Shown here piece after piece: positions 9,578 through 57,733 of a DNA stretch of 64,000 nt. Origin of the DNA: Malacoraja senta (Eukaryota); contig CM075981.1 of the NCBI GenBank assembly GCA_038087875.1, forward strand, positions 930,001 through 994,000, given 5' to 3'. Within the stretch, counting starts at the first letter, position 1; each line of letters opens with the position of its first letter. Both the position numbers and the translations under genes were made by a program. Under the pieces are notes generated by a model. It had not been told where the DNA came from and did not search any database. It was given only the letters and a program-made list of their open reading frames with translations.

Positions 9578-9904
9578 TTTCAGGTGGACTGTCCCTGTGG
9601 GGAAAGAAATCTGTAGGAGGAGTTGTGGGAAAAGATATCACAATCGATTGTCACTATAATGCATGGTACCGCTCACGCATTAAATACTGGTGTGACGGGT
9701 GGACTAACGCGTGTTTAATTGTAGTGGAAACAAATGGGCAACATGGACGGAGCGGAAGAGTGTCAATCACAGATAACCAGGCACAAGGAATATTTACTGT
9801 GACTGTGGAGCATCTTCACTCTGGAGATACAGGATGGTACAGATGTGGAATTGCTGCACCTGGCGTTGATCCATGGTTTAACGTTCATCTCCAAGTATCT
9901 GAAG
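9578..9904 (+). CDS. CD300/pIgR-like receptor copy 1, exon 2 (Ig V domain)
   Basis: ctcag| acceptor, GAAG|GTACGT donor, 327 nt, phase 1-1. Motifs ITIDCHY, KYWC..W..AC, RVSITD, FTVTV..L...DTGWYRCG give four Cys, as in CD300/pIgR/TREM V domains. Confidence 0.93.
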
Positions 9905-9924
9905 GTACGTTTTACATTTATACC

Positions 9925-10110
9925 AAGCCAATTAACCTGTAAACCTGTACGTTTTGGAGTGTGGGAGGAAACCGAAGTTTTCAGAGAAAACCCACGCAGG
10001 TCACGGGGAGAATCTACAAACTCCAGACAGACAAGGCCCCCGTGGTCATGATCGAACCCGGGTCCCTGGCGCTGTAAGGCAGCAATTCTACAGCTGTACC
10101 ACCGTGCTGC
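9925..10110 (-). mobile_element. HE1/V-SINE-type SINE just downstream of the V donor
   Basis: Reverse complement of head and V-domain. Mirrored at ~16625-16815. Confidence 0.8.
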
Positions 10111-10324
10111 CCTAAATGATGTACCAAAGGGATCCATGCCGGGATCACAATGCTGTTTGGCCGAATTCTGTTCTTACCCCTCCTGGGAGTTTACAGATGA
10201 CGCCCCTGGATCTTGAATAATGACGAAACGGCAAACAGGGAATTGTCTTTTATTGTGTAGGAAAGAACTGCAGATGCTGGTTTAATCGAAGATAGACACA
10301 AAATCTGTAGAGAAGATAGATTCG

Positions 10325-10815
10325 TCACTGGGTGGCGCCGAGATGGCAGCCTCGCCAAATCCTGTGTGTTATTTCAACATTTTTGTTATTTTTACTGTTT
10401 CTAAAATGTATGTTTTAATGTTTCGACCGTGGGGCTTGTGGACTTTAACACCATGAAGCCGCGGTCTCCAGTTAGAAAAGGCCGATTCGGGAGATCCATT
10501 CCGCGGAGTGTTTCCGTTCCGCCCCGACGCTGGAGTCTCCATCATCCCGACGAGAGGGCTTGAACATCGGCCCGTCGGCAGAGGCAGTGCTGAGGGTTCA
10601 AGGCCCCGACCACCACGGGTGAACAAAGGAGGAAGATGACTGAACTTTATTGCCTTCCATCACAGTTGCGAATGATGATTCCCCTGTGGTGGATGTTTTT
10701 GTTAAAATTATTGTGTATTGCGTTATTCTTTTTAACTTGTATGGCTGTATGATAACTCAAATATCACTGTACCTTTATTGGTGCACGTGACAATAAATGT
10801 GAACTTGAACTTGAA
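10325..10815 (+). mobile_element. Unclassified GC-rich non-autonomous retroelement with tgacaataaa(tgaact)n tail
   Basis: Related - strand copies at ~35075-35880 and ~37760-38160, and a truncated copy at 16078-16410. The tail resembles L2/Rex1-type 3' ends. Confidence 0.55.
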
Positions 10816-11004
10816 ATGCTGGAGTAACTCAGCGGGACAGGCAGCATTCTGGAGGGAAGGAATGGGTGACGTTTCCGCCCGAGACCCATCGTCAGACCCG
10901 AAACTTCACCCATTCCTTCTCTCCAGAGATGCTGCCTGTCCCGCTGAGTTACTCCAGCATGTTTTGTCTATCTTTAATTGACTTTTATTTCCTTTTCTCA
11001 ACAG

Positions 11005-11113
11005 AACCTAAATCTAATTCTGAATCGTCAACAACAGTAGCATTTACTTCAACTACAAAAGTAACACCTGAAAACAAATCTCAGGAAACCCCTGCGCCCA
11101 GTTTCGATAACAA
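11005..11113 (+). CDS. Receptor copy 1, exon 3 (Ser/Thr/Pro-rich stalk) EPKSNSESSTTVAFTSTTKVTPENKSQETPAPSFDN
   Basis: Polypyrimidine tract plus caacag| acceptor, phase 1 in. AA|GTATAA donor, phase 2 out, matching the next exon. Confidence 0.8.
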
Positions 11114-11187
11114 GTATAATTTTCACTTGCTCAAGTTTTGATTGGCCTTGCTTTTCAATATGAGGGGTGGAGACACAAGGAACTGTT

Positions 11188-12319: not shown

Positions 12320-12410
12320 TTACATTATATGGACGGTGGGACGCTGGCTGTACTTCGCTCTGCTTGGGATCTGCAGTATCTCAGTCTCATTGTTCACAAG
12401 TATAAGGAAG
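12320..12410 (+). CDS. Receptor copy 1, exon 4 (transmembrane, contains Arg) YIIWTVGRWLYFALLGICSISVSLFTSIRK
   Basis: tttgctcag| acceptor, phase 2 in. Hydrophobic segment. AAG|GTATGT donor, phase 0. Confidence 0.85.
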
Positions 12411-13313: not shown

Positions 13314-13349
13314 GGACCCAATGAACCGAAACCTCACAGCTTTCCGTAG
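13314..13349 (+). CDS. Receptor copy 1, exon 5 (short cytoplasmic tail) GPNEPKPHSFP*
   Basis: Strong acceptor (T)10-GCAG|. The phase-0 reading stops at TAG 13347-13349. The complete model is 206 aa from ATG 4421. Confidence 0.65.
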   Translation, partial: GPNEPKPHSFP

Positions 13350-14300: not shown

Positions 14301-15250
14301 ACTTAACTCAACTAAGATGTCCAATTCTACTGAATAAAAGTCACCATATCTCTCAAGCTAATTGGCACTTTACTCAAAGCAATGGGTTCCATCTGACAAT
14401 CTTGTTCTCTTTATTCATTGCATGTGAAAACAGTTGAGACTTAATTTTATTTCCTTGCCTCAACAGAACTTGAATAATCTTATGAAGGAATGATGAATGA
14501 ATAGGTTTATTGACCAAATATTCACATACAAGGAATTTGCCTTGCTCTGCTCGCAAGTGCAATGTGACATTAGGAATGACACCTAAAACATTAAACATTA
14601 ACAATAACATATATTTTTATAACAGAACCAATGACAACCACACTATCTCCAATTACAAGATTGATATCAACAGTACTCAAAACAAAATATAGTGCAAGAT
14701 ATATTCTTGTCATAACTTTTTTTACGCACTGGAACTGAATCCATGTCAAGGACATTTGGTCGATTTTGTTTTGTTAAACGCAAGTGTCAAGAGTTTGATT
14801 GTCATATGTAGCGACAGGGGGGCAATATAGTTCTTTGTTTCAGTAGCATAACGAGTCTGCGGATTTATAGAGTTATACAACACGGGAAACAGACCCTTCA
14901 GCCCAACTTGTCCAAGTCGACCAAGATGCCCCATCTACTCTAGTTTCCTCCTGCCAGCGTTTGGTCCATCTCCTTCTAAACCAGTCCTATCATGTAACTG
15001 TCCAAAATGCCTTTAAAATGTTTTTGTAGCACCTGCCTCAACTACCTCATCATTTAGCTCATTCCATACACCCACAACTCACTGCGTGAAAAAATGATGC
15101 CCCTCAGGAACCTATTAAATATTTTCGCTTTTACCTGAAGCCTTGTCCCCTGAGTCTTGATTCCCCTACTCTAGGTAAGAGACTTGTTTCTCTTGTTACC
15201 CTTGTTTCCCTTTCCCCTAATCTGTCTGAAGAAAGGTCTCGACTCTGAAA

Positions 15251-15636
15251 CATATAAGATTGTTAAGGGCTTGGACATGCTAGAGGCAGGAAAACATGTT
15301 CCCGATGTTGGGGGAGTCCAGAACCAGGGGCCACAGTTTAAGAATAAGGGGTAAGCCATTTAGAACAGAGAGGAGGAAACACTTTTTCTCACAGAGAGTG
15401 GTGAGGTCTGTGGAATTCTCTGCTTCAGAGGGCAGTGGAGGCAGGTTCTCTGGATACTTTCAAGAGAGAGCTAGATAGGCCTCTTAAAGATAGCAGAGTC
15501 AGGGGATATCGGGAGAAGGCAGGAATGGGGTACTGATTAGGGATGATCAGCCATGATCACATTGAATGGCGGTGCTGGCTCGAAGGGCCAAATGGCCTAC
15601 TCCTGCACCTATTGTCTATAGTATTGTCTATTGTCT
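15251..15636 (+). mobile_element. CR1 LINE 3' fragment
   Basis: MFPMLGESRTRGHSLRIRG...; 3'UTR gatgatcagccatgatcac...cctactcctgcacc. Copy at ~55822-56205. Confidence 0.9.
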
Positions 15637-16834
15637 AAAACATCACCTATTCCTTTTCTCCAGAGATGCTGCCTGATCCGATGAGTAACTCTAGATTTTT
15701 GTGTCTATCTTCAGTTTGAACGAGCATCTGCAGTTCCTTCCAACACAACCCTATCTATTCCCCTCATTGTGCTTGTAAACACAATGCACACAGTTAATAT
15801 ATAATGTCCAAATATGAATTAGTTGATAACTCCAATAAGGAACAATAAATAACATGTCCTTAGTCCAACCAAAGACTGTCCATACTTCATAGTTGAGGTT
15901 AGTGTGCAGTGTTCAAAAGCCTAATTGTTGCTGCTGAGAAGCTGTTTCTTGAACCTGGAGGTCACGGTTTTCAGGCTCCTGTACCTTCTTCCCAATGGCA
16001 AGAGTGAAATGAGAGCATGGTCAGAGTGTCATAGAGTGATACAGTGTGGAAACAGGCCCTTCGGCCCAACTTTATTCGGCAATAAAGTTCAGTCATCTTC
16101 CTCCTTTGTTCACCCGTGGTGGTCGGGGGGCCTTGAACCCTCAGCACTGCCTCTGCCGACGGGCCGATGTTCAAGCCCTCTCGTCGGGATGATGGAGACT
16201 CCAGCGTCGGGGGCGGAACGGAAACACTCCGCGGAATGGATTCTCCCGAATCGGCCTTTTCTAACTGGAGACCGCGGCTTCATGGTGTTAAAGTCCACAA
16301 GCCCCACGGTCGAAACATTAAAACATACATTTTAGAAACAGTAAAAATAACAAAAATGTTGAAATAACACACAGGATTTGGGCGAGGCTGCCATCTCGGC
16401 GCCACCCAGTGACGCATCTATCTTCTCTATGGATTTTGTGTCTATCTTCGATTAAACCAGCATCTGCAGTTCTTTCCTACACAACAAAAGACATTCCCTG
16501 TTTGCCGTTTCGTCATTATTCAAGATCCAGGGGCCGTCATCTGTAAACTCCCAGGAGGGGTAAGAACAGAATTCGGCCAAACAGCATTGTGATCCCGGCA
16601 CTGATCCCTTTGGTACATCATTTAGGGCAGCACGGTGGTACAGATGTAGAATGGCTGCCTTACAACGCCAGGGACCCGGGTTCGATCATGACCACGGGGG
16701 CCTTGTCTGTCTGGAGTTTGTACATTCTCCCCGTGAACTGCGTGGGTTTTTCTCTTAAAACTTCGGTTTCCTCCCACACTCCAAAAACGTACAGGTTTAC
16801 AGGTTAATTGGCTTGGTATAAATGTAAAACGTAC

Positions 16835-17160
16835 CTTCAGATACTTGGAGATGAACGTTAAACAATGGATCAACGCCAGGTGCAGCAATTCCACAGCTGT
16901 ACCATCCTGTATCTCCAGAGTGAAGATGCTCCACAGTCACAGAAAATATCCTTGTGTCGGGTTATCTGTGATTGACACTCTTCCGCTCCGTCCGTGTTGC
17001 CCATTTGTCTTCACTACAATTGAGCACGCGATATCCCACCCGTGACACCAGTATTTAATGCGTGAGCGGTACCGTGCTTTATAGTGACAATCGATTGTGA
17101 TATCTTTTCTCACAACTCCTCCTACAGATTTCTTTCCCCACAGGGACAGTCCACCTGAAA
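16835..17160 (-). pseudogene. Orphan inverted Ig V exon (V2) with a 1-nt deletion
   Basis: Paralog of 9578-9904 with both splice sites intact. It is 326 nt, with a frameshift near 16949 (ggatatttt vs ggaatattt) that could be a consensus error. No - strand leader or TM exon found. Confidence 0.8.
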
Positions 17161-17211
17161 CTGAGAGGAAAAAATCTTCAGAAAATGTACAGGACAAATC
17201 TACTTAACACA

Positions 17212-19769
17212 AATCTACTAGCCCCGCCGACCCCGACTCCACTGCCCGAGGACTCCTACCGTCGGGTCCGCCGACCCTCGCCACTGAACCTCCCCTCCAG
17301 CACCCCGCAGCCGTCGCCTCACCTGCAGACTGGTCTGTGTACTGGGCCTGAAGCCTCCACGCTGCTCACTCCACCCTCCTGGGTTTCACTCCACTGGGTC
17401 CTAGCGCTAGTCTGCCTATACCTCAGTGTTAGTTCCACTGATACTTCCCCATCCTTCTCCAACTATGGGACCCCTTCTCTTCCCCACCCACACTACAGCC
17501 CTCTCACCCCCCCCACCCCCTCACCACCCACCACCCCCCCCACCACCCACCACCCCCCCACCACACATCGCCTCGTCCCATTCCACCCACCTGCCTTCCT
17601 CCGGCCCCAACCCTCATCCCTGCCGGGTGTTCACCATCCCCCCCGACCTCCCCCTCTCCGACATCGAACGGTCCGTCCACAGCAGAGGTCTTACCTTTGT
17701 CCCCCTCCGTCCCCACCTCAATGAGTTCCGCGCCCTCCATGACTTGGAACGCTTCTACCGTCGCCTTCGCCTCACAGCGCACTTCCATGGGAAGGAGTCC
17801 TCGCCCCCCACTGATGACCCCTTTTCCTGGCTCCAACACACCCCCCTCCTCGTGGAACCCCCCCTCGTAGCCTTCCGGCTTTAGAACTCTTCATCAAAAA
17901 CTTGCCGCAGTGACATCAACCGACTCAACTTCTCCACTCCCCGTCTCACTCCAATCTCTCCCCCCCTGAACGCACTGCCATCGACTCACTCCGCAACAAC
18001 CTAGATTGGGTTATCAAACCCGCCGACAAGGGAGGTGTCGTGGTAGTCTGGCGCGTCGATCTCTTACAAAGCTGAGGCCACGCGCCAACTCTCGGACACC
18101 TCCTCCTACATACCCCTGACCATGACCCCCACTGACGAGCACCAGGCCACCATCTCCAGCACCATCACCGACTTCATCCACTCCCACGCCCTGCCCGACC
18201 GAGCCTCCAACCTCATCGTTCACCAGCCCCGCAAGGCCCAATTTTACCTTCTCCCCAAAATCCACAAACCTGACTGTCCCGGTAGACCCATTGTCTCTGC
18301 CTATTCGTGCCCCACCGAACTCATCTCCGCCTACCTCGACTCCATCCTATCCCCTTGGTTAAATCCCTCCCTACCTATGTTCAAGACACCTCTGACACTC
18401 TCCGTCATCTGCGCGCATTCCACTCTCTAGGCCCTCACCCCCTCATCTTCACCATGGACGTCCAGTCATTGTACACCTCCATCCCCCACCAGGATGGTCT
18501 CGAAGCCCTCCGTTTTTTCCTCGACCGAAGAAGCAACCTACACCCGGCCACTGACACCCTCCTCCCACTAGCGGAGCTGGTCCTTACCCTCAATAACTTC
18601 TCATTTGACTCCTCCCATTTCCTCCAAATACAAGGCGTAGCTATGGGCACACGAATGGGCCCCAGGTACGCCTGCCTGTTTGTCGGGTACGTAGAACAAT
18701 CCTTGTTCAATACGTACCAGGGCCCCATCCCCGAATTCTACCTCCGCTACACCGATGACTGTTTTTGGTGCCACCTCCTGCACCCACACACAACTGACTG
18801 ACTTCATCCGCTTCACCACCAACTTCCATCCGGCACTCAAATACACCTGGACCATTTCCGACACTTCCCTACCATTCCTTGACCTCACTATCTCCATCGC
18901 AGGTGATAGACTTCATACCGACATCCACTACAAACCTACTGACTTACATGGCTTTCTGGACTACACTTTCTTCCCACCCTGCTTCCTGTAAGGACTCCAT
19001 CCCCACTCTCAATTCCTCCGTCTACGCCGCATCTGCTCCCAGGATGAGGCGTTTCCACACCAGGGCATCCGAAATGTCCTCATTCTTCAGGGAACGGGGG
19101 TTCCCCTCCTCCACCATAGATGAGGCTCGCACCAGGGTCTCTGCCATACCCCGTAACACTGCTCTCTCTCCCCATCCCCCCACTCACAACAAGGGCAGGG
19201 TCCCCCTAGTCCTCACCTTTCATCCCACCAGCCGTCACATAAAACAAGTGATCCTCCGTCAGTTTTGCCACCTCCAACGTGACCCCACCACTCGCCACAT
19301 CTTCCCATCTCCCCATATGTCTGCCTTCCGCAAAGACCACCTCCTCCGTAACTCCCTTGTCAATTCTCTTCCCTCCCGTACCACCCCCTCCCCGGGTACT
19401 TTCCCTTGCAACCGCAAGAGATGCAACACTTGTCCCTTCACCTCCCCCCTCGATTCCATTCAAGGACTCAAGCAGTCGTTCCAGGTGCGACAGAGGTTCA
19501 CCTGCATCTCCTCCAACCTCATCCATTGCATCCGCTGCTCTAGATGTCAGCTGATCTACATCGGTGAGACCAAGCGGAGGCTTTGCGATCGTTTCGCCGA
19601 ACACCTCCGGTCGGTCCGCAATAACCTACCTGACCTCCCGGCTCAGAACTTCAACTCCCCCTCCCATTCTGTATCTGACCTCTCTGTCCTGGGTCTCCTC
19701 CATGGCCACAGCGAGCAACACCGGAAATTGGAGGAAATGCACCGCATATTCCGCTTGGGCAGTCTACAT
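17212..19769 (+). mobile_element. Penelope-like element in the inverted arm, frameshifted, 3' end replaced by CR1
   Basis: RT and GIY-YIG fragments in ORFs 18122-19850. Same insertion point relative to the V exon (tacttaacaca at 17201-17211). Confidence 0.93.
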
Positions 19770-22700
19770 AGATACATAGATAGATACATAGAAAATAGGT
19801 GCAGGAGTAGGCCATTCGGCCCTTCGAGCCTGCACCGCCATTCAATATGATCATGGCTGATCATCCAACTCAGTATCCCGTACCTGCCTTCTCTCCATAC
19901 CCCCTGATCCCCTTAGCCACAAGGGCCACATCTAACTCCCTCTTAAATATAGCCAATGAACTGGTCTCAACTACCCTCTGTGGCAGAGAGTTCCAGAGAT
20001 TCACCACTCTCTGTGTGAAAAAGTTTTTCCTCATCTCGGTCCTAAAGGATTTCCCCCTTATCCTTAAGCTGTGACCCCTAGTCCTGGTCTTCCCCAACAT
20101 CGGGAACAATCTTCCTGCATCTAGCCTGTCCAACCCCATAAGAATTTTGTACGTTTCTATAAGATCCCCTCTCAATCTCCTAAATTCTAGCGAGTATAAG
20201 CCAAGTCTATCCAGTCTTTCTTCATATGAAAGTCCTGACATCCCAGGAATCAGTCTGGTGAACCTTCTCTCCACTCCCTCTATGGCTATAATGTCCTTCC
20301 TCAGATTTGGAGACCAAAACTGTATGCAATGCTCCAGGTGTGGTCTCACCAAGACCCTGTACAACTGCAGTAGAACCTCCCTGCTCCTATACTCAAATCC
20401 TCTTGCTATGAAGGCCAACATACCATTCGCTTTCTTCACTGCCTGCTGCACCTGCATGCCTACTTTCAATGACTGGTGTACCATGACACCCAGGTCTCGC
20501 TGCATCTCCCCATTTCCTAATCGGCCACCATTTAGATAATAGTCTGCCTTCCCGTTTTTGCCACCAAAGTGGATAACCTCACATTTATCCACATTATACT
20601 GCATCTGCCAAACATTTGCCCACTCACCCAGCCTATCCAAGTCACCTTGCAGTCTCCTAGCATCCTCCTCACAGCTAACACTGCCCCCCAGCTTAGTGTC
20701 ATCCGCAAACTTGGCGATGTTGCTTTCAATTCCCTCGTCCAGATCATTAATATAAATTGTAAATAGCTGGGGTCCCAGCACTGAGCCTTGCGGTACCCCA
20801 CTAGTCACTGCCTGCCATTGTGAAAAGGACCCGTTTACTCCTACTCTTTGCTTCCTGTTTGCCAGCCAGTTCTCTATCCACATCAATACTGAACCCCCAA
20901 TACCGTGTGATTTAAGTTTGTATCCTAATCCCTTATGCGGTACCTTGTCGAAAGCCTTCTGAAAGTCCAGATACAACACATCCATTGGTTCTCCCCTATC
21001 CACTCTACTAGTTACATCCTCGAAAAATTCTATAAGATTCGTCAGACACGATTTACCTTTCGTAAATCCATGCTGATTTTGTCCAATGATTTCACCACTT
21101 TCCAAATGTGCTGCTATCCCATCTTTAATAACTGACTCTAGCAGTTTCCCCACTACCGATGTTAGACTAACTGGTCTGTAATTCCCCGTTTTCTCTCTCC
21201 CTCCCTTCTTAAAAAGTGGGGTTACGTTTGCTACCCTCCAATCCTCAGGAACTACTCCAGAATCTAAAGAGTTTTGAAAAATTATCACTAATGCATCCAC
21301 TATTTCTGGAGCTACTTCCTTAAGTACTCTGGGATGCAGCCTATCTGGCCCTGGTGATTTATCGGCCTTTAATCCATTCAATTTACCCAACACCACTTCC
21401 CGACTAACCTGGATTTCACTCAGTTCCTCCATCTCCTTTGACCCGCGGCCCCCTGCTATTTCCAGCAGATTATTTATGTCTTCCTTAGTGAAGACGGAAC
21501 CAAAGTAGTTATTCAATTGGTCCGCCATATCCTTGTTCCCCATGATCAATTCACCTGTTTCTGACTGCAAGGGACCTACATTTGTTTTAACTAATCTCTT
21601 TCTCTTCACACATCTATAAAAACTTTTGCAGTCAGTTTTTATGTTCCCTGCCAGTTTCCTTTCATAATCCATTTTCCCTTTCCTAATTAAGCCCTTTGTC
21701 CTCCTCTGCTGGTCTCTGAATTTTTCCCAGTCCTCTGGTATGCTGCTTTTTCTGGCTAATTTGTACGCATCATCTTTTGCTTTGATACTATCCCTGATTT
21801 CCCTTGTTATCCACGGATGCACTACCTTCCCTGATTTATTCTTTTGCCAAACTGGGATGAACAATTTTTGTAGTTCATCCATGCAGTCTTTAAATGCCTT
21901 CCATTGCATATCCACCATCAACCCTTTTAGAACTAATTGCCAGTGAATCTTGGCCAATTCACGTCTCATACCCTCAAAGTTACCTTTCTTTAAGTTCAGA
22001 ACCGTTGTTTCTGAATTAACAATGTCACTCTCCATCATAATGAAGAACTCAACCATATTATGGTCACTCTTGCCCAAGGGGGCACGCACAACAAGACTGC
22101 TAACTAACCCTTCCTCATTACTCAATACCCAGTCTAGAATAGCCTGCTCTCTCGTTGGTTCCTCTACATGTTGGTTTAGATAACTATCCTACATACATTC
22201 CAAGAAATCCTCTTCCTCAGCACACCTGCCAATTTGATTCACCCAATCTATATGTGGATTGAAGTCACCCATTATAACTGTTTTGCCTTTGTTGCACGCA
22301 TTTCTAATTTCCTGTTTGATGCCATCCCCAACTTCACTACTACTGCTAGGTGGCCTGTATACAACACCTACCAGCGTTTTCTGCCCCTTAGTGTTTCGCA
22401 GCTCTACCCATCCTCCAAGCTAATGTCCTTCCTTTCCACTGCGTTAATCTCTCTAACCAGCAACGCTACCCCACCTCCTTTTCCTTTCTCTCTATCCCTC
22501 CTGAATATTGAATATCCCTGGATGTTCAGCTCCCAGCCTTGGTCACCCTGGAGCCATGTTTCCGTGATCCCAACTATATCATAATCATTAATTGCTATCT
22601 GCACGTTCAACTCATCCACCTTATTACGAATGCTCCTTGCATTCAGACACAAAGCCTTCAGGCTTGTTTTTACAACGCTCTTACCCCTTATACAATTATG

Positions 22701-24233
22701 TTGAAAAGTGGCTCTTTTTGATTTTTGCCCTGGATTTGTCTGCCTGCCACTTTTACTTTTCACCTTGCTACCTATTGCTTCCGCCCGCATTTTACACCCC
22801 TCTGTTTCTCTGCTCACCCATTTAAGAACCCCACCACCTCTTATTCTCTGTTTATTAATGTTTTCTTCTTTCCCCCCTACATGTTGGGTCTGAGTGCTTT
22901 CCTTCTCTGCCTCCTGCCTCACACACTGTCTAATAGCATTCTCTATTTGAGTCCCTCCCCCCAACCATTCTACTTTAAAGACTCCCCAGTAGCCTTTGCA
23001 GATCTCCTCGCCAGGATATCGGTCCCCCTCAGGTTCAAGTGCAACCCATCCTTTTTGTACAGGTCGAACCTTCCACAAAAGAGGTCCCAATGATCCAGAA
23101 ATTTGAATCCCTGCCTTCTGCACCAGTCCTTCAGCCACGCATTTATCCTCCACCTCGCTCCTTTCCTACTCTCACTGTCGCGTGGCACAGGCAGTAATCC
23201 CGAGATTGTTACCTTTGCTGTCCTTCTCTTTAACTCCCCTCCTAACTCCCTAAATTCTCCTTTCAGGACCTCTTCTCTTTTTTTAACCTATGTCATTGGT
23301 ACCTATATGTACCACGACCTCGGGCTCCTCTCCCTGCCCTTTCAGGATATCTTGGACACGTTGAGACACATCACAGACCCTGGCACCAGGGAGGCAAACT
23401 ACCATCCGGGTCTCCCGACTGCGTCCACAGAATCGCCTGTCTGACCCCCTAACTATAGAGTCCCCTATTAGTATTGCCCTCCTCTTCTTTTCCTTACCCT
23501 TCTGAGCAACAGGGCCGGTCTCTATACCGGAGGCCCGGCCGTTGTCGCTACCCCCAGGTAGGCTGTCCACCCCAACAGTGCTCAAACAGGAGTACGTATT
23601 GTCAAGGTGTACAGCCACCGGGGTACTCTCTCGTCCCTGCCTGTGCCCCTTGCCTCTCTCAACCGTGATCCACTTGCCTGCCTCCTGTGGTATTGGAGTG
23701 ACCACATCCCTGTAACTCTTCTCAATGAGTTCCTCGCTCTCCCTGACCAGACGGAGGTCATCGAGCTGCTGCTCCAGGTTCCTAATACGGTCCATTAGGA
23801 GCCCCATCTCGATACACCTGGCGCAGATGTGGACGTCTGGAGGGCTATCAGACTCCATGACTTCCCACATCTGACATCCAGAACAGTAAACTGCCCTGGC
23901 CCTCATACTCCCCTTACCTAGGATACAATACAAAACAAACTGCTACAATACAAAACAAACTGCTACAATACAAAACAAACTGCTACAATACAAAACAAAC
24001 TGCTACAATACAGTACAATCAGCAGGGATCTGACTCCCAATCAGCTGCTCCCTCTTGTCTGCTTCCACCAATCAGCGGCTTCCTCAAGCCCACTTGTTTT
24101 TGAAGTGGAACTTGGAACGTTGCCGATTTTGGCACTCTGTAAGGAACAAGCAAGCCCCGCGCTCCACTTTATCCCCTACCGCTCAGGTGTAGCTCCTCCC
24201 TCTGCGACAGCTCCAACGGCTCTCGGGCCTCTG
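19770..24233 (-). mobile_element. Near full-length CR1 LINE (ORF1 zinc finger/SGNH esterase; ORF2 APE endonuclease + RT)
   Basis: ORF1 23283-23933 and 22970-23188 (CSGC..CARC, LIGDSIVR, HIGTND, DGLHLN). ORF2 begins LNARSIRNK; 751-aa RT portion at 19870-22125 (GVPQGSVLGP, FADD). Disrupted by a stop near 22190 and a 13-nt deletion near 22410. Confidence 0.95.
23924..24013. repeat. 20-bp tandem repeat (tacaatacaaaacaaactgc) x4.5 in the CR1 5' region
   Basis: Four exact units plus a partial unit read directly. Confidence 0.95.
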
Positions 24234-24235
24234 TT

Positions 24236-26992: not shown

Positions 26993-27004
26993 ATTTTTAT
27001 AATT

Positions 27005-27167
27005 AAACTCTAATATTATATCTATAATTTTATCAAAAAATTGAGGGTTATCAAAATTCGGAGCATAAATATTTACCATAGTTATTGGGGTAGCATAAAT
27101 TTCTCCCGAAACTATGATATACCTTCCCTCTTTATCTGATATAGTATTCTTTAATTTGAAAGAATTA
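27005..27167 (-). mobile_element. L1/Tx1-type endonuclease fragment (element A, 5' part)
   Basis: SDKEGRYIIVSG...VNIYAPN; continues at 24510 as YKN-VIIGGDFN once element B is removed. Confidence 0.85.
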
Positions 27168-39879: not shown

Positions 39880-40155
39880 GAAATAGCAGTGTTGGAAGGA
39901 AACCACGTTGATGCAAATCTGCAGCAACTTGCAAAGATCAGGGCAGATGACCATTTGGATAACAATGAAGGTGAACGCACGTATGCAGTGGTGAATTGTC
40001 AAAGGAAGTCGAGATCAAGGCAACATGTGGCTGAAAACGCTGTCGTCTACGCAGATGTCAATTTTCATCGCAACTACCCAAAGGGCACTCGGAAACCCCA
40101 CTCTCCTGGGACTCCAGAGAACCCCGAATCAATCTATGCCTCTGTTGTTTCTTAG
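39880..40155 (+). CDS. Terminal cytoplasmic exon of an inhibitory receptor with ITIMs
   Basis: acattttag| acceptor and 91 open codons EIAVLEG...RTYAVV...VVYADV...SIYASVVS*. VVYADV and SIYASV fit the ITIM consensus (I/L/V/S)xYxx(L/V/I). Confidence 0.8.
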   Translation, partial: EIAVLEGNHVDANLQQLAKIRADDHLDNNEGERTYAVVNCQRKSRSRQHVAENAVVYADVNFHRNYPKGTRKPHSPGTPENPESIYASVVS

Positions 40156-40245
40156 GAGAGATTTTTAATTTGGTGTGAGTTTTTGGCAATACTTGATTTA
40201 CCACTCTGTTCAGATGACACTGCGTTAATCTGCTTTATACTTTGT

Positions 40246-40469
40246 CAAAGATGGACACAAAATGCTGGAGTACCTCAGCAGGTCAGGCAGCATCTCTGGA
40301 GAAAATGGACAGGTGGCCTATGAGGTTGGGACCCTTCTTCAGATGGTCTGTAGAAAGGTCCTGACCCAAAATGGTACCAATCCATTTTCGCCAGAGATGT
40401 TTCTTGACCATCTGAGTTACTCCAGCATTTTGGGTTTGTCTTTGGTATAAACTGGCATCTTTTTATAGC
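40246..40469. mobile_element. Degenerate fold-back pLTR element downstream of the ITIM exon stop
   Basis: Inverted arms; 10-bp TSD tatactttgt (40236-40245, 40470-40479). Confidence 0.7.
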
Positions 40470-44995: not shown

Positions 44996-45053
44996 ATGGT
45001 CTCCGTGGATAAAACTATGTGGATTACAATCCTTCTCATTTATTCCCAGCCTG
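44996..45053 (+). CDS. CD300/pIgR-like receptor copy 2, exon 1 (signal peptide)
   Basis: Identical to 4421-4478; ATGs at 44996 and 45017. Confidence 0.8.
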
Positions 45054-47266: not shown

Positions 47267-50100
47267 TTAAAGAAGGAACTGCAGATGCTGGAAAATCGAA
47301 GGTACACAAAAATGCTGGAGAAACTCAGCGGGTGCAGCAGCATCTATGGAGCGAAGGAAATAGGCAATGTTTCGGGCCGAAACCCTTCTTCAGACTGATA
47401 GGAGGTGGGGAGATGAAAGGAAAAAAGGAAAAGCGGCGGAGGAGGAGCCAGAGGGCTGGGGGATGGGAGGACACAACCAGAGGGCTGATGAAGGGGAGGG
47501 GACAGCAACGGCTAGCAGAGTTGGGAGAATTCAATGTTCATGCCCCAAGGATGTAGACTGCCCAAGCGGAATATGCGGTGCATTTCCTCCAATTTCCGGT
47601 GTTGCTCGCTGTGCCCATGGAGGAGACGCAGGACAGAGAGGTCAGATACGGAATGGGAGGGGGAGTTGAAGTGCTGAGCCACCGGGAGGTCAGGTAGGTT
47701 ATTGCGGACCGACCGGAGGTGTTCGGCGAAACGATCGCCAAGCCTCCGCTTGGTCTCACCGATGTAGATCAGCTGACATCTAGAGCAGCGGATGCAATAG
47801 ATGAGGTTGGAGGAGATGCAGGTGAACCTCTGTCGCACCTGGAACGACTGCTTGGGTCCTTGAATGGAATCGAGGGGGGAGGTGAAGGGACAAGTGTTGC
47901 ATCTCTTGCGGTTGCAAGGGAAAGTACCCGGGGAGGGGGTGGTACAGGAGGGAAGGGAAGAATTGACAAGGGAGTTACGGAGGGAGCGGTCTTTGCGGAA
48001 GGCAGACATGGGAGGAGATGGGAAGATGTGGCGAACGGTGGGGTCACGTTGGAGGTGGCGAAACTGACGGAGGATCACTTGTTGTATGTGGCGGCAGGTG
48101 GGATGAAAGGTGAGGAATAGGGGGACTCTGCCCTTGTTGTGAGTGGGAGGATGGGGAGAGAGAGCAGTGTTGCGGGGTATGGCAGAGACCCTGGTGCGAG
48201 CCTCATCTATGGTGGAGGAGGGGAACCCCCGTTCCCTGAAGAATGAGGACATTTCGGATGCCCTGGTGTGGAACGCCTCATCCTGGGAGCAGATGCGGAG
48301 TAGACGGAGGAATTGAGAGTGGGGGATGGAGTCCTTACAGGAAGCAGGGTGGGAAGAAGTGTAGTCCAGATAGCCATGGGAGTCAGTAGGTTTGTAGTGG
48401 ATGTCGGTATGAAGTCTATCACCTGCGATGGAGATAGTGAGGTCAAGGAATGGTAGGGAAGTGTCGGAAATGGTCCAGGTGTATTTGAGTGCCGGATGGA
48501 AGTTGGTGGTGAAGCGGTTGAAGTCAGTCAGTTGTGTGTGGGTGCAGGAGGTGGCACCAAAACAGTCATCGATGTAGCGGAGGTAGAAGTCGGGGATGGG
48601 GCCCTGGTACGTATTGAACAAGGATTGTTCTACGTACCCGACAAACAGGCAGGCGTAGCTGGGGCCCATGCGTGTGCCCATAGCTACGCCTTGTATTTGC
48701 AGGAAATGGGAGGAGTCAAATGAGAAGTTATTGAGGGCAAGGACCAGCTCCACTAGTGGGAGGAGGGTGTCAGTGGCCGGGTATAGGTTGCTTCTTCGGT
48801 CGAGGAAAAACCGGAGGGCTTCGAGACCATCCTGGTGGGGGATGGAGGTGTACAATGACTGGATGTCCATGGTGAAGATGAGGCGGTGAGGGCCTAGAGA
48901 GTGGAATGCGCGCAGATGACGGAGAGTGTCTGAGGTGTCTTGAACATAGGTAGGGAGGGATTTAACCAAGGGGGATAGGATGGAGTCGAGGTAGGCGGAG
49001 ATGAGTTCGGTGGGGCACGAACAGGCAGAGACAATGGGTCTACCGGGACAGTCACGTTTGTGGATTTTGGGGAGAAGGTAAAATCGGGCCTTGCGGGGCT
49101 GGGGAACGATGAGGTTGGAGGCTCGGTCGGGCAGGGCGTGGGAGTGGATGAAGTCGGTGATGGTGCTGGAGATGGTGGCCTGGTGCTCGTCAGTGGGGTC
49201 ATGGTCCAGGGGTATGTAGGAGGAGGTGTCCGAGAGTTGGCGCGTGGCCTCAGCTTTGTAGAGATCGACGCGCCAGACTACCACGACACCTCCCTTGTCG
49301 GCGGGTTTGATAACCCAATCTAGGTTGTTGCGGAGTGAGTCGATGGCAGTGCGTTCAGGGGGGGAGAGATTGGAGTGAGACGGGGAGTGGAGAAGTTGAG
49401 GCGGTTGATGTCACTGCGGCAGTTTTTGATGAAGAGTTCTAAAGCCGGAAGGCTACGAGGGGGGTTCCACGAGGAGGGGGTGCGTTGGAGACAGGAAAAG
49501 GGGTCATCAGTGGGGGGCGAGGACTCCTTCCCATGGAAGTGCGCTGTGAGGCGAAGGCGACGGTAGAAGCGTTCCAAGTCATGGAGGGCGCGGAACTCAT
49601 TGAGGTGGGGATGGAGGGGGAGAAAGGTAAGACCTCTGCTGTGGACAGACCGTTCGATGTCAGAGAGGGGGAGGTTGGGGGGGATGGTGAACACCCGGCA
49701 GGGATGAGGGTTGGGGCCGGAGGAAGGCAGGTGGGTGGAATGGGGACGAGGCGATGTGTGGTGGGGGGGTGGTGGGTGGTGGGCGGGTGGTGGGTGGTGA
49801 GGGGGTGAGAGGGCTGTAGTGTGGGTGGGGAAGAGAAGGGGTCCCATAGTTGGAGAAGGATGGTGAAGTATCAGTGGAACTAACACTGTGGACTAGGCAG
49901 ACTAGCGCTAGGACCCAGTGGAGTCAAACCCAGGAGGGTGGGAGTGAGCAGCGTGGAGGCTTCAGGCCCAGTACACAGACCAGTCTGCAGGTGAGGCGAC
50001 GGCTGTGGGCTGCTGGAGGGAGGTTCAGTGGCGAGGGTCCGCGGACCCGACGGTAGGAGTCCTCGGGCAGTGGAGTCGGGGTCGGCGGGGCTAGTAGATT
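47267..50100 (-). mobile_element. Penelope-like element with an uninterrupted 590-aa RT + GIY-YIG frame
   Basis: ORF 47512-49284; TSD tgtgttaagta at 47256-47266 and 50101-50111. Confidence 0.95.
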
Positions 50101-51227
50101 TGTGTTAAGTAGATTTGTCCTGTACATTTTCTGAAGATTTTTCCTCTCAGTTTCAGGTGGACTGTCACTGTGGGGAAATAAATATGTAGAAGGAGTTGTG
50201 GGAAAAGATATCACAATCGATTGTCACTATAAAGCATGGTACCGCTCACACATTAAATACTGGTGTGACGGGTGGGATATCGCGTGTTTAATTGTAGTGG
50301 AAACAAATGGGCAACACGGACGGAGCGGAAGAGTGTCAATCACAGATAACCAGGCACAAGGAATATTTACTGTGACTGTGGAGCATCTTCACTCTGGAGA
50401 TACAGGATGGTACAGATGTGGAATTGCTGCACCTGGCGTTGATCCATGGTTTAACGTTCATCTCCAAGTATCTGAAGGTACGTTTTACATTTATACCAAG
50501 CCAATTAACCTGTAAACCTGTACGTTTTGGAGTGTGGGAGGAAACCGAAGTTTTCAGAGAAAACCCACGCAGGTCACGGGGAGAATCTACAAACTCCAGA
50601 CAGACAAGGCCCCCGTGGTCATGATCGAACCCGGGTCCCTGGCGCTGTAAGGCAGCAATTCTACAGCTGTACCACCGTGCTGCCCTAAATGATGTACCAA
50701 AGGGATCCATGCCGGGATCACAATGCTGTTTGGCCGAATTCTGTTCTTACCCCTCCTGGGAGTTTACAGATGACGCCCCTGGATCTTGAATAATGACGAA
50801 ACGGCAAACAGGGAATTGTCTTTTATTGTGTAGGAAAGAACTGCAGATGCTGGTTTAATCGAAGATAGACACAAAATCTGTAGAGAAGATAGATTCGTCA
50901 CTGGGTGGCGCCGAGATGGCAGCCTCGCCAAATCCTGTGTGTTATTTCAACATTTTTGTTATTTTTACTGTTTCTAAAATGTATGTTTTAATGTTTCGAC
51001 CGTGGGGCTTGTGGACTTTAACACCATGAAGCCGCGGTCTCCAGTTAGAAAAGGCCGATTCGGGAGATCCATTCCGCGGAGTGTTTCCGTTCCGCCCCGA
51101 CGCTGGAGTCTCCATCATCCCGACGAGAGGGCTTGAACATCGGCCCGTCGGCAGAGGCAGTGCTGAGGGTTCAAGGCCCCGACCACCACGGGTGAACAAA
51201 GGAGGAAGATGACTGAACTTTATTGCC
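47551..51227. repeat. Inverted repeat, left arm (unit 2)
   Basis: Reverse complement of 56654-60338. Confidence 0.95.
50151..50477 (+). CDS. Receptor copy 2, exon 2 (Ig V domain)
   Basis: 327 nt with the same splice sites; 10 nt and 7 aa differences from copy 1. Confidence 0.93.
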
Positions 51228-51577: not shown

Positions 51578-51686
51578 AACCTAAATCTAATTCTGAATCG
51601 TCAACAACAGTAGCATTTACTTCAACTACAAAAGTAACACCTGAAAACAAATCTCAGGAAACCCCTGCGCCCAGTTTCGATAACAA
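51578..51686 (+). CDS. Receptor copy 2, exon 3 (stalk)
   Basis: Identical to 11005-11113. Confidence 0.8.
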
Positions 51687-52892: not shown

Positions 52893-52983
52893 TTACATTA
52901 TATGGACGGTGGGACGCTGGCTGTACTTCGCTCTGCTTGGGATCTGCAGTATCTCAGTCTCATTGTTCACAAGTATAAGGAAG
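52893..52983 (+). CDS. Receptor copy 2, exon 4 (transmembrane, Arg)
   Basis: Identical to 12320-12410. Confidence 0.85.
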
Positions 52984-53886: not shown

Positions 53887-53922
53887 GGACCCAATGAACC
53901 GAAACCTCACAGCTTTCCGTAG
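53887..53922 (+). CDS. Receptor copy 2, exon 5 (short tail)
   Basis: Identical to 13314-13349. Confidence 0.65.
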   Translation, partial: GPNEPKPHSFP

Positions 53923-56900
53923 AAGGCAGAATGAAGATCCACTGGTGATAGTGACTGAGAAACAACTCTCCAACAAGACCAAATGATCATTATTATTTTG
54001 AATGAATGAATGAATGAATGAATGCTTTATTGTCACATGTGACAAGTCGCAGTGTAATTCTTTGCTTGCTAACCCAAGGTATGAAAATAGTCACCCATAA
54101 AGGGCATTGACAAAGTGTTTTTCAATTTGCTTTCATAATAGACTGCACAGAATTAATGTTTCTTCTGCTAAAACTATTAACTTAGTTCACTCAATATTCA
54201 CTCAGTAAAGGTGCCATCAAAACAATGTTGCAAGCCTTTATAGCAATGACATTATTTTGTGTTGTGTAGCATGATATTGCAGTCATGAGGAATAAATTGT
54301 ATTAAATCCTGGAAATGCCTCATGGTTTTAACTGTGAAGAATATTTGGAAGAGGGAAACTATAAGCTATGACATCCCATCAGATCAATTGTTCTGGAAGT
54401 ACTTTTTCTCATGAGAACATCATTGTAATATACATTGCTGAGCAGTTTTCAAGTCACGTCTGGCTTATTCTTATATGCATGTATGGTGAGGTGCAGGTAC
54501 AATGAAAATCACACTTGTGGCAACGTCACAGGCCCATACACGTAGACACACAAAAATATAAATGATACATAGGGTGTTCAGCGGTGGAGTTGCTGCCTTC
54601 ATTTCAGCGCCAGAGACGCGGGTTCGATCCTGACTACGGGTGCTGTCTGTACAGAGTTTTTATGTTCTCCCCATGACCAAGTGGGTTTTCTCTGAGATCT
54701 TTGGTTTCTTCCCACACTCCAAAGACGTGCAGGTTTGTAGGTTAATTGGCTTCGGTAAAATTGTAAATTGACCCTAGTGTGTACAGGATAGTGCTGGTGA
54801 GAGGAGGGGATCACTGGTTAGCGTGAACTAGGTGGGCCAAAGGTCCCGTTTCCATGCTGTATCTCTAAACTAAACTTAACTCAACTAAGATGTCCAATTC
54901 TACTGAATAAAAGTCACCATATCTCTCAAGCTAATTGGCACTTTACTCAAAGCAATGGGTTCCATCTGACAATCTTGTTCTCTTTATTCATTGCATGTGA
55001 AAACAGTTGAGACTTAATTTTATTTCCTTGCCTCAACAGAACTTGAATAATCTTATGAAGGAATGATGAATGAATAGGTTTATTGACCAAATATTCACAT
55101 ACAAGGAATTTGCCTTGCTCTGCTCGCAAGTGCAATGTGACATTAGGAATGACACCTAAAACATTAAACATTAACAATAACATATATTTTTATAACAGAA
55201 CCAATGACAACCACACTATCTCCAATTACAAGATTGATATCAACAGTACTCAAAACAAATATAGTGCAAGATATATTCTTGTCATAAATTTTTATACGCA
55301 CTGGAACTGAATCCATGTCAAGGACATTTGGTCGATTTTGTTTTGTTAAACGCAAGTGTCAAGAGTTTGATTGTCATATGTAGCGACAGGGGGGCAATAT
55401 AGTTCTTTGTTTCAGTAGCATAACGAGTCTGCGGATTTATAGAGTTATACAACACGGAAACAGACCCTTCAGCCCAACTTGTCCAAGTCGACCAAGATGC
55501 CCCATCTACTCTAGTTCCTCCTGCCAGCGTTTGGTCCATCTCCTTCTAAACCAGTCCTATTCATGTAACTGTCCAAATGCCTTTAAAATGTTTTTGTAGC
55601 ACCTGCCTCAACTACCTCATCATTTAGCTCATTCCATACACCCACAACTCACTGCGTGAAAAAATGATGCCCCTCAGGAACCTATTAAATATTTTCGCTT
55701 TTACCTGAAGCCTTGTCCCCTGAGTCTTGATTCCCCTACTCTAGGTAAGAGACTTGTTTCTCTTGTTACCCTTGTTTCCCTTTCCCCTAAACCTGTCTGA
55801 AGAAAGGTCTCGACTCTGAAACATATAAGATTGTTAAGGGCTTGGACATGCTAGAGGCAGGAAACATGTTCCCGATGTTGGGGGAGTCCAGAACCAGGGG
55901 CCACAGTTTAAGAATAAGGGGTAAGCCATTTAGAACAGAGAGGAGGAAACACTTTTTCTCACAGAGAGTGGTGAGTCTGTGGAATTCTCTGCTTCAGAGG
56001 GCAGTGGAGGCAGGTTCTCTGGATACTTTCAAGAGAGAGCTAGATAGGCCTCTTAAAGATAGCAGAGTCAGGGGATATCGGGAGAAGGCAGGAATGGGGT
56101 ACTGATTAGGGATGATCAGCCATGATCACATTGAATGGCGGTGCTGGCTCGAAGGGCCAAATGGCCTACTCCTGCACCTATTGTCTATAGTATTGTCTAT
56201 TGTCTAAAACATCACCTATTCCTTTTCTCCAGAGATGCTGCCTGATCCGATGAGTAACTCTAGATTTTTGTGTCTATCTTCAGTTTGAACGAGCATCTGC
56301 AGTTCCTTCCAACACATACCCTATCTATTCCCCTCATTGTGCTTGTAAACACAATGCACACAGTTAATATATAATGTCCAAATATGAATTAGTTGATAAC
56401 TCCAATAAGGACAATAAATAACATGTCCTTAGTCCAACCAAAGACTGTCCATACTTCATAGTTGAGGTTAGTGTGCAGTGTTCAAAAGCCTAATTGTTGC
56501 TGCTGAGAAGCTGTTCTTGAACCTGGAGGTCACGGTTTTCAGGCTCCTGTACCTTCTTCCAAATGGCAAGAGTGAAATGAGAGCATGGTCAGAGTGTCAT
56601 AGAGTCATAGAGTGATACAGTGTGGAAACAGGCCCTTCGGCCCAACTTTATTCGGCAATAAAGTTCAGTCATCTTCCTCCTTTGTTCACCCGTGGTGGTC
56701 GGGGGGCCTTGAACCCTCAGCACTGCCTCTGCCGACGGGCCGATGTTCAAGCCCTCTCGTCGGGATGATGGAGACTCCAGCGTCGGGGCGGAACGGAAAC
56801 ACTCCGCGGAATGGATCTCCCGAATCGGCCTTTTCTAACTGGAGACCGCGGCTTCATGGTGTTAAAGTCCACAAGCCCCACGGTCGAAACATTAAAACAT

Positions 56901-57406
56901 ACATTTTAGAAACAGTAAAAATAACAAAAATGTTGAAATAACACACAGGATTTGGCGAGGCTGCCATCTCGGCGCCACCCAGTGACGCATCTATCTTCTC
57001 TATGGATTTTGTGTCTATCTTCGATTAAACCAGCATCTGCAGTTCTTTCCTACACAACAAAAGACAATTCCCTGTTTGCCGTTTCGTCATTATTCAAGAT
57101 CCAGGGGCGTCATCTGTAAACTCCCAGGAGGGGTAAGAACAGAATTCGGCCAAACAGCATTGTGATCCCGGCACTGATCCCTTTGGTACATCATTTAGGG
57201 CAGCACGGTGGTACAGATGTAGAATGGCTGCCTTACAACGCCAGGGACCCGGGTTCGATCATGACCACGGGGGCCTTGTCTGTCTGGAGTTTGTAGATTC
57301 TCCCCGTGAACTGCGTGGGTTTTCTCTTAAAACTTCGGTTTCCTCCCACACTCCAAAAACGTACAGGTTTACAGGTTAATTGGCTTGGTATAAATGTAAA
57401 ACGTAC

Positions 57407-57733
57407 CTTCAGATACTTGGAGATGAACGTTAAACAATGGATCAACGCCAGGTGTAGTAATTCCACAGCTGTACCATCCTGTATCTCCAGAGTGAAGATG
57501 CTCCACAGTCACAGTAAATATTCCTTGTGTCGGGTTATCTGTGATTGACACTCTTCCGCTCCGTCCATGTTGCCCATTTGTTTCCACTACAATTGAACAC
57601 GCGATATCCCACCCGTGACACCAGTATTTAATGTGTGAGCGGTACCGTGCTTTATAGTGACAATCGATTGTGATATCTTTTCTCACAACTCCTCCTACAT
57701 ATTTCTTTCCCCACAGTGACAGTCCACCTGAAA
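57407..57733 (-). other. Orphan inverted Ig V exon (V2'), open frame and both splice sites intact
   Basis: 327 nt, VSGGLSLWGKKYVGGVVRKDITIDCHYKARYRSHIKYWCHGWDIACSIVVETNG...WYSCGITTPGVDPLFNVHLQVSE. No leader or TM on this strand in the window. Confidence 0.85.

Follow-up and report, generated by a model that had tools for sequence, protein, structure and literature searches.

Patchwork site patterns among four copies of a CD300/pIgR-like V exon in a tandem and inverted duplication of a skate

The immunoglobulin loci of the chicken contain pools of pseudo-V segments, i.e., leaderless V copies in either orientation near one functional V, which take part in conversion by patches of ~10-200 bp; this conversion is somatic, AID-dependent, takes place in B cells and draws on many donors. 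In large palindromes, e.g., those of the human Y chromosome, the arms exchange sequence non-reciprocally and are kept >99.9% identical. Microconversion in the MHC class I and II genes and in CYP21A2/CYP21A1P transfers very short templated patches amid retained differences, and the MHC genes are diverse in their exons and homogenised in their introns. Gene conversion in the IgV exon of CD300A and CD300C has been documented in primates (PMC12447643), and the clearnose skate's MDIRs (modular domain immune-type receptors) are CD300/TREM/pIgR-like multigene receptors (PMC3031540). No report of inverted orphan exons or of conversion was found for MDIRs. Here we describe a stretch of 64,000 nucleotides from the skate Malacoraja senta (assembly GCA_038087875.1, contig CM075981.1, positions 930,001 to 994,000 of the forward strand), referred to as the window, in which one V exon of this type occurs in four copies, two in tandem receptor genes predicted from the sequence and two in inverted orientation, and in which all three possible groupings of the four copies are found among the variable sites of that exon.

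Site patterns and divergence of the V exons

Comparison of the window with itself by self-blastn revealed a tandem repeat with a period of ~40.57 kb, in which positions 1265-23417 match positions 41865-64000 with 98.66% identity (162 mismatches, 69 gaps). Each tandem unit holds one inverted repeat, the arms of which are 96.4-96.9% alike and enclose a spacer of 5.4 kb. The plus-strand arms of units 1 and 2 are called 1p and 2p, the minus-strand arms 1m and 2m. An earlier note on this DNA had named the V exons V1, V2, V1' and V2', which were deduced to be those of 1p, 1m, 2p and 2m, respectively, and site positions are quoted in V1 (= 1p) coordinates. The units, arms and V exons are located as follows:

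1-23417, no strand assigned: tandem unit 1, visible part (self-blastn match to unit 2)
40769-64000, no strand assigned: tandem unit 2, visible part (self-comparison)
6976-10654, plus strand: arm 1p, with part of a retroelement, the V exon and 750 bp of intron 2 (self-blastn, outgroup collinearity)
16078-19769, minus strand: arm 1m, inverted secondary copy with ~20 private 1-bp insertions or deletions (indels); not present in the orthologous region of Amblyraja radiata
47551-51227, plus strand: arm 2p (self-blastn)
56654-60338, minus strand: arm 2m (self-blastn)
9578-9904, plus strand: V exon 1p (V1), predicted exon 2 of receptor gene 1, with an open frame and intact AG/GT splice signals (Pfam V-set 2.8e-12, splice model)
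16835-17160, minus strand: V exon 1m (V2), predicted inverted orphan copy; splice signals kept, one frame-shifting 1-bp deletion (alignment)
50151-50477, plus strand: V exon 2p (V1'), predicted exon 2 of receptor gene 2; open frame (Pfam, alignment)
57407-57733, minus strand: V exon 2m (V2'), predicted inverted orphan copy; open frame, splice signals kept (alignment)

The complete arms were aligned with MAFFT, yielding a four-way alignment of 3,717 columns, 3,658 of them ungapped; all site-pattern results are based on these four sequences from one assembly. Among the 62 parsimony-informative sites, 58 group the copies by orientation, 3 by tandem unit and 1 crosswise. In addition, there are 68 singletons (10 in 1p, 25 in 1m, 12 in 2p and 21 in 2m) and 1 three-state site. 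All four discordant sites fall within the V exon, in a stretch of 151 bp, where they are interspersed with sites of the orientation type (bases are given in the order 1p/1m/2p/2m):

9594: C/C/A/A, by unit, synonymous
9611: C/C/A/A, by unit, Ser/Tyr
9628: G/A/G/A, by orientation, Gly/Arg
9664: T/C/T/C, by orientation, Trp/Arg
9677: G/G/A/A, by unit, Arg/His
9694: G/C/G/C, by orientation, Asp/His
9744: T/C/C/T, crosswise

The alignment bears out the earlier note, according to which 9594, 9611 and 9677 unite V1 and V2 against V1' and V2', 9628, 9664 and 9694 unite V1 and V1' against V2 and V2', 9744 unites V1 and V2' against V1' and V2, and the three bipartitions interleave within ~150 bp; every coordinate that it gave is correct, as are the residues. 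Confinement of the discordant sites to the exon has a probability of P = 5.9e-5 under uniform placement and of P = 8.9e-4 given the positions of the informative sites, and their span of <=150 bp one of P = 4e-4. Sites 9594 and 9611 lie in a stretch of 307 bp (9321-9627) without any orientation-type site, the mean spacing of such sites being 63 bp, and within this stretch 1p and 1m differ at 4 sites and each other pair at 8. Over the exon, 2p and 2m differ at 13 sites, compared to 17 in the other three pairs of plus and minus arms. The discordance is restricted to the V exon and the sequence close to it, and all four copies are involved.

Exactly one canonical AG/GT splice-site combination reads through the exons of the plus-strand gene, giving a protein of 206 amino acids of type I, with a signal peptide, a V domain, a Ser/Thr-rich stalk, an Arg-containing transmembrane segment and a tail of 11 residues. 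This architecture parallels that of the transcript-derived 191-aa protein P0169 (P and L numbers are our handles for database proteins and loci). The plus-strand V exons are accordingly predicted, from splice signals and homology, to be exon 2 of two complete tandem receptor genes, and by analogy with activating CD300 members the product looks like an adaptor-coupled receptor. The remaining exons are the following:

4421-4478, plus strand: leader exon of gene 1, outside the arm; identical unit-2 copy at 44996-45053 (tblastn with P0044 and P0047)
11005-11113, plus strand: Ser/Thr-rich stalk exon of gene 1, in the spacer; identical unit-2 copy at 51578-51686 (homologues, splice model)
12320-12410, plus strand: transmembrane exon of gene 1, its hydrophobic stretch containing Arg; identical unit-2 copy at 52893-52983 (93% identical to P0044 and P0169)
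13314-13349, plus strand: short cytoplasmic tail exon of gene 1 with stop codon; identical unit-2 copy at 53887-53922 (homologues, splice model)

The minus-strand V exons lie 2.7 kb past the stop codon of the gene and point back toward it. Searches with homologues and tblastn found neither leader nor downstream exons for them in the window, and the exons 1m and 2m appear to be promoter-less inverted orphan copies. At codon 15 (17110 in 1m, 57683 in 2m), both orphans encode Arg where 445 of 495 domains of the family have Gly, and an Arg at this near-invariant position fits relaxed constraint. The derived changes on the lineage of the functional plus-strand V exons are, every one of them, at variable positions.

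The exons encode CD300/pIgR-like V-set domains of the skate MDIR type. The V-set domain is recognised by Pfam PF07686 (2.8e-12 and 1.9e-12), and an AlphaFold (AF2) model of it, built on 30 relatives, reached a predicted local distance difference test score (pLDDT) of 93.8 and contains the strands A-G. The best match of this model in Foldseek was CD300lf, with a template modelling score (TM) of 0.94, a root-mean-square deviation of 1.3 A and 38% identity. A phmmer search against the PDB returned pIgR domains at 43 bits and CLM-1/CD300lf at 4e-19, much weaker matches to TIM, NKp44 and TREM2, and TCR at ~1e-3; the nearest solved relatives would therefore be pIgR D1 and CD300 rather than antigen-receptor V domains. 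Cys22, Cys36, Cys43 and Cys87 are invariant or nearly so among the 30 relatives and present in all three open copies, which predicts a second cysteine pair in the C-C' region beside the canonical B-F pair. The closest database proteins, with 70-77% identity over the V domain, belong to skates and rays, i.e., Amblyraja radiata (XP_032898776.1), Leucoraja erinacea (XP_055510915.1, 'CMRF35-like molecule 1') and Rhinoraja longicauda, and further relatives are the 'Modular domain immune-type receptor 2/5' proteins (MDIR2, MDIR5) of Rostroraja eglanteria. According to the protein searches, the V-exon family has many members in skates and rays. When only the V exon served as the query, one protein was matched, the little skate orthologue; a wider protein search gave no protein from the same species, and a search of Rfam no match. 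At the DNA level, the orthologous loci of L. erinacea (L001) and A. radiata (L002) share 88-92% identity with the window.

Between the units there is no difference in the leader, stalk, transmembrane and tail exons. In their V exons, the two genes differ by 10 nucleotides, amounting to 8 nonsynonymous changes in 7 residues; the remainder of the near-identical block would predict 0.8 differences (P = 1.6e-8). Among all four copies, variable columns make up 24/321 of the exon (7.5%) versus 3.2% elsewhere (P = 4e-4); 21 of the 24 sites are nonsynonymous, and the nonsynonymous density is 0.085, compared to 0.016 in the flanking intron (P = 1.8e-6). In the AF2 model, the variable codons, which coincide with family-hypervariable columns, are placed as follows:

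A/A' strand: codons 7, 9, 11
BC loop (= CDR1, complementarity-determining region 1): codons 25, 27, 31
CC' loop and edges: codons 37, 40, 41, 44
DE loop: codons 65, 66
F/G hairpin (= CDR3): codons 86, 90, 91, 97

As the two synonymous differences between the otherwise identical genes exceed expectation, point mutation and selection are insufficient to explain the divergence; either the V exon received imported sequence, or the homogenisation of the remaining gene parts passed it by. On a larger scale, the divergence between the units (1-23417 vs 40769-64000) is itself a mosaic. It amounts to ~2% at 1-4 kb, to <=0.2% from 4 to ~16 kb, covering the entire gene, and to ~1% at 16-22 kb; the near-identity from ~4 to 14.5 kb is interrupted at 9001-10000 and by a 220-bp patch in the retroelement. 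The low divergence of the gene body could be due to recent homogenisation or to copies made identical in consensus building.

Sequence transfer and its rivals

Parallel mutation was simulated as independent changes on the four terminal branches, with a generous five changes per branch. With only 24 exon positions free to change, at least four homoplasies occurred with P = 0.005 and at least three unit-type sites with P = 0.006, indicating that independent parallel mutation is unlikely. Sites 9594 and 9611, located 17 bp apart, are both transversions with the same bipartition, one silent and one a replacement; that the silent site shares the pattern of 9611 suggests copying rather than convergent selection on the protein. 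To root the changes, the L. erinacea and A. radiata orthologues and an A. radiata paralogue were used. At 9677 both orthologues and the paralogue have A, which is thus ancestral, and the derived G is common to both unit-1 arms; as this change creates a CpG, it does not represent CpG decay. Rooting also uncovered hidden incompatibilities, in which a derived state is found in three copies and the outgroup state in the fourth. At 9703/9707, 1p is ancestral-like and 2p goes with the block of the inverted arms (patch <=21 bp, bounded by 9694 and 9716); at 9856, 2m is ancestral and 1m has the state of the plus arms (patch <=31 bp); at the intronic site 10014, 1m is ancestral and 2m has the state of the plus arms (patch <=71 bp). 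In the retroelement segment 6976-7472, which lies in the 3' part of the element and forms the first 500 bp of the arms, rooting against copies at the outgroup loci showed the singletons to be ordinary derived changes private to one copy, and the signal is therefore local to the V exon; this rooting covers only those 500 bp of the retroelement part, the reverse-transcriptase part of the arms being unrooted.

The earlier note had attributed the unit-specific variants shared by opposite arms to arm-to-arm gene conversion after the tandem duplication. Of this, the sharing itself stands, as both arms of a unit have unit-specific states in common beyond what independent mutation yields, and the interpretation is partly supported: one tract does not explain the sites, as the orientation-type differences at 9628, 9664 and 9694 are intact, so that at least two patches (<=307 bp and <=29 bp) are needed. 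Phylogenetic incompatibility beyond recurrent mutation and co-transfer of linked silent and replacement variants (9594, 9611), both expected of gene conversion, were found. We place about even confidence in a reading in which the V exons underwent several non-reciprocal exchanges of short patches, the remainder of the genes was homogenised and diversifying selection acted on the binding loops.

Several candidate explanations were rejected. One conversion tract from 9594 to 9744 is ruled out, as it would have removed the orientation-type differences at 9628, 9664, 9694 and 9716 from one unit, yet all of them are intact. Crossing-over between the inverted arms, flipping the spacer, should leave consecutive cross-type sites inward of the breakpoint, whereas there is just a single site of this type. 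A false palindrome produced by fold-back or missed-adapter reads is ruled out by the 58 fixed arm differences common to both units, and a palindrome kept uniform by concerted evolution by the same 58 differences and the arm similarity of 96.4-96.9%. The only significant run in a GENECONV-like test lies in the retroelement part and consists of two compensating 1-bp indels private to 1m.

A number of observations weigh against short-patch exchange. Very short patches are required, with retained differences in between, and the whole signal rests on ~8 sites in ~6 events. The earlier note had proposed GENECONV and PHI tests on the complete-arm alignment; run as GENECONV-like and PHI-like tests, they did not recover a contiguous tract in the exon, with no significant run there in the former and P = 0.06-0.5 in the latter. 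There is also a detection bias: unit-type sites are visible only where the units differ, which is almost only in the exon, and as the units are near-identical elsewhere, exchange in other parts of the arms would be seen only as lost orientation-type sites. At 9744, the ancestral state is C in a CpG and T occurs in 1p and 2m, which is best explained by two C>T changes at the CpG, i.e., recurrence and not exchange, contrary to a simple arm-to-arm picture. Recurrent hypermutable positions are part of what the note had named as grounds for abandoning its reading, and at 9594 and 9611 all four bases each occur among seven skate sequences (orthologues and paralogues), marking both positions as hypervariable; 9703-9707 are likewise multi-state among skates. 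Finally, arm 1m, with ~6 private 1-bp indels per kb in its stretch, is the least reliable of the four, yet all three unit-type calls depend on it.

Some of these points are what would be expected if a few hypermutable or positively selected positions had changed repeatedly without any transfer of sequence. The double C>T change at 9744, the multi-state sites, the position of 9677 within a CpG, the location of the variable codons in family-hypervariable columns and the failure of the PHI-like and GENECONV-like tests to detect tract structure all agree with such recurrence. However, the simulated probability remains at P<=0.006 even with 24 free sites, 9594 is synonymous and yet patterned like its neighbour 9611, with a transversion at both, 9677 changed in the non-hypermutable direction (A>G), 10014 is intronic, and orphan copies should be free of selection at the protein level; we consider recurrence on its own decidedly improbable. 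The dependence on 1m, in turn, raises the question of an assembly or polishing artefact, in which the true sequences fit the orientation tree and mixed reads wrote shared states into the copies. The quality of the consensus is indeed uneven. Inter-unit 1-bp indels cluster at 14684-19176 (vs 55257-59732), where short homopolymers account for most of the 39 events; 8-14.6 kb has none and the plus arm just 2. In the spacer part of this stretch, the indel-to-mismatch ratio is ~2:1, and in comparison with A. radiata unit 1 is the odd one at 17/17 resolvable indel columns and unit 2 at none, with 2 columns ambiguous. Private 1-bp indels number ~20 in 1m and ~9 in 2m but 0-1 in the plus arms, and seven 1m-private 'substitutions' are really two compensating changes in homopolymer length. 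Relative to the 590-codon frame of 2p, the retroelement frame is broken solely by small indels (2 frame-shifting ones in 1p, 6 in 1m and 7 in 2m), with 0 stop-creating substitutions in any copy. Such a ratio of indels to substitutions is non-biological and the signature of an under-polished long-read consensus; the frameshift in V exon 1m is therefore not trustworthy, and the 1-bp deletion may be assembly noise. Were 1m truly A-A-A at the three unit-type sites, all three would become private changes of 1p. Nevertheless, random consensus errors take the form of indels and would not match the base of the partner arm three times over, nothing would make read mixing unit-specific, and it should be least probable where the copies diverge the most, i.e., in the exon (3-5%), no such sharing occurs at the other 50 orientation-type sites, and the hidden incompatibilities involve 2p and 2m as well. 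On balance, we regard an artefact as unlikely.

Exchange may also have been real but supplied from elsewhere, with other MDIR/CD300-like V exons outside the window as donors from which patches common in the family were imported separately. The V exon is the sole part of the arms with many paralogues, its family in skates and rays is large, and the unit-2 states Tyr at codon 9 and His at codon 31 are common in it. Private changes occur in clusters (three within 5 bp in 1p, doublets in 1m and in 2m), the A. radiata paralogue has states that are otherwise private to 1p or 2p, and the second patch of inter-unit differences (7355-7575) sits in the multi-copy retroelement. Against such donors, the same patch would be needed twice, in both arms of one unit, and this in both units, and tblastn identified no further V-set exon within the 64-kb window; this account, too, appears quite improbable to us. 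Haplotypes wrongly laid in tandem are not favoured, as the window contains 0 N runs and the need for sharing between arms would remain.

Origin of the inverted copy and its surroundings

The bulk of each arm is formed by a Penelope-like retroelement on the strand opposite to the receptor gene, and a long interspersed nuclear element (LINE) adjoins the outer end of the inverted arm:

6691-9527, minus strand: Penelope-like retroelement (reverse transcriptase and GIY-YIG endonuclease) in intron 1 (Pfam RVT_1, GIY-YIG; empty site in outgroups)
19772-23153, minus strand: LINE (endonuclease and reverse transcriptase; Pfam); unit-2 copy from 60341 (60341-63736)

The Penelope-like element lies 50 bp upstream of the V exon, and its unit-2 copy is located at ~47267-50100. 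A target-site duplication of 11 bp (6680-6690 and 9528-9538) borders the element. Reverse transcriptase and GIY-YIG follow each other in a single frame, which in arm 2p is open over 590 codons; RVT_1 was matched at 1.1e-7 and GIY-YIG at 1.7e-4, slightly under the Pfam cutoff (22.3 vs 22.6 bits). In L. erinacea and A. radiata, the sequence corresponding to window position 6690 is joined straight to that of 9528, and this empty site in both outgroups together with the target-site duplication identifies the element as a lineage-specific insertion. Since the arm starts within the element, the insertion preceded the inverted duplication. In A. radiata, the sequence continues from window position 16072 to ~28858, so that the inverted arm and the adjoining LINE are absent there, and the plus arms, being collinear with the outgroup skates, are the originals. 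The history of the locus consequently runs from insertion of the Penelope-like element in intron 1 via a 3.7-kb inverted copy to a tandem duplication of ~40.6 kb.

In mechanistic terms, the retroelement first inserted into intron 1, after which a piece of 3.7 kb, comprising part of the element, the V exon and the start of intron 2, was copied in inverted orientation to a place 2.7 kb past the stop codon, leaving a promoter-less orphan V exon. The region of ~40.6 kb was subsequently duplicated in tandem, and the two genes would since have been kept almost identical across ~10-12 kb. Under short-patch exchange as preferred above, the V exons would meanwhile have exchanged several very short patches, of a few bp to ~300 bp, by non-reciprocal gene conversion, mainly between the functional exon and the inverted orphan of its own unit, and possibly also from MDIR V exons outside the window. 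Sites 9594 and 9611 would represent one co-transferred patch and 9677 a second micro-patch or a parallel change, and in the ligand-binding loops diversifying selection would have kept replacement changes.

The junctions of the inverted copy have features of their own. The inner junction (16068-16095; in unit 2 56640-56665) lies in a repeat resembling a short interspersed nuclear element (SINE) with a perfect 9-bp hairpin. At the outer junction (19760-19790; in unit 2 ~60330-60350), where the 3' microsatellite tail of the LINE abuts the outer end of arm 1m, there is ~5 bp of microhomology. These features suggest that the inverted copy was made by template switching during replication. Many fixed differences between plus and minus arms are doublets or triplets of adjacent bases, far above the expectation for single-base mutation, examples being 7436-7439, 9225-9227, 9319-9320, 9779-9781, 10135-10136 and 10306-10307; such changes may have been introduced together, e.g., by error-prone synthesis at the inverted copying. 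In the purine-rich part of the retroelement at 7355-7575, a second cluster of differences between the plus arms is found, with 9 in 220 bp and private changes in all four copies, which might stem from sequence supplied by other element copies or, the sequence being multi-copy, from errors in the consensus.

The DNA between arms and between units is mostly of the LINE type, with RVT_1 and endonuclease domains at 19772-23153, 25262-28743, 30650-31213 and 36217-37218. One LINE reverse-transcriptase frame extends over 832 codons in unit 2 and 751 in unit 1, and a 1-kb piece of the LINE 3' end is present three times (19772-20774, 36217-37218 in inverted orientation, and 60341-61343). An exon-like stretch at 39880-40152 on the plus strand matches the C-terminus of P0003, a 'polymeric immunoglobulin receptor-like' protein from Rhinoraja, with 70% identity, and in L. 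erinacea an upstream neighbour gene with multiple V domains ends at the collinear place. The A. radiata orthologue (L002 17193-44404) has ~27 kb between the stalk and transmembrane regions that are not collinear with the window and contain an additional V exon at 40164-40530, and the annotated protein P0044 has an extra domain (weak matches to Pfam Ig_2/Ig_3) that does not occur in the window. The gene content of the locus differs strongly among skates.

Comparison with known systems

If the mosaic is real, the locus represents a compact and datable example of a germline-encoded innate receptor gaining diversity in its binding site. The order of events, i.e., retroelement insertion, inverted duplication and tandem duplication, is clear, and the two young tandem genes are identical in all coding exons but the ligand-binding one, which is shared as a patchwork with an inverted orphan. 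MDIR/CD300-like genes have barely been studied in cartilaginous fish and are known mainly from cDNA, and a mechanism would be added to this knowledge if the reading is true. Caution is advised, as uneven assembly quality in nested repeats can mimic or blur signals of conversion. The general understanding is unchanged, since conversion of V exons is a familiar phenomenon in CD300, KIR/LILR and MHC genes; what makes the present case somewhat more interesting is the addition of the orphan inverted exon, the co-copied retroelement and the taxon.

The chicken pseudo-V pools resemble the locus in having leaderless V copies near a functional V and exchange of short patches. In contrast, the process here would be germline, with one orphan per unit and exchange seemingly in both directions. 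That the inverted promoter-less V exon acts as a lineage-specific germline conversion partner diversifying two tandem MDIR genes, and hence as a germline counterpart of the chicken pseudo-V segments on a non-rearranging receptor, is a highly speculative extension, to which we assign little probability. With the palindromes of the human Y the locus has inverted arms on one chromosome and non-reciprocal exchange in common, but its arms are 96.4-96.9% alike with 58 fixed differences, indicating that exchange is rare and local. Microconversion in the MHC and CYP21A2 genes is similar with regard to the short interleaved patches and to the diversity in the ligand-binding exon with homogenised flanks; it concerns another gene family and taxon, while the present case comprises four copies in one assembly.

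The clearnose skate MDIRs belong, like the genes described here, to a skate multigene family with a CD300/pIgR-like V domain and a leader-V-stalk-transmembrane architecture; the gene in the window differs in having a single V domain and a tail of 11 residues, and is likened to the MDIRs via its named relatives MDIR2 and MDIR5. The primate CD300A/CD300C pair (PMC12447643) shares the fold family and the exchange between adjacent paralogues in the V exon only. There, however, conversion homogenises the V exon while the tails diverge, whereas in the skate the V exon is divergent and patchy and the rest of the gene identical, and one of the partners would be a promoter-less inverted orphan exon.

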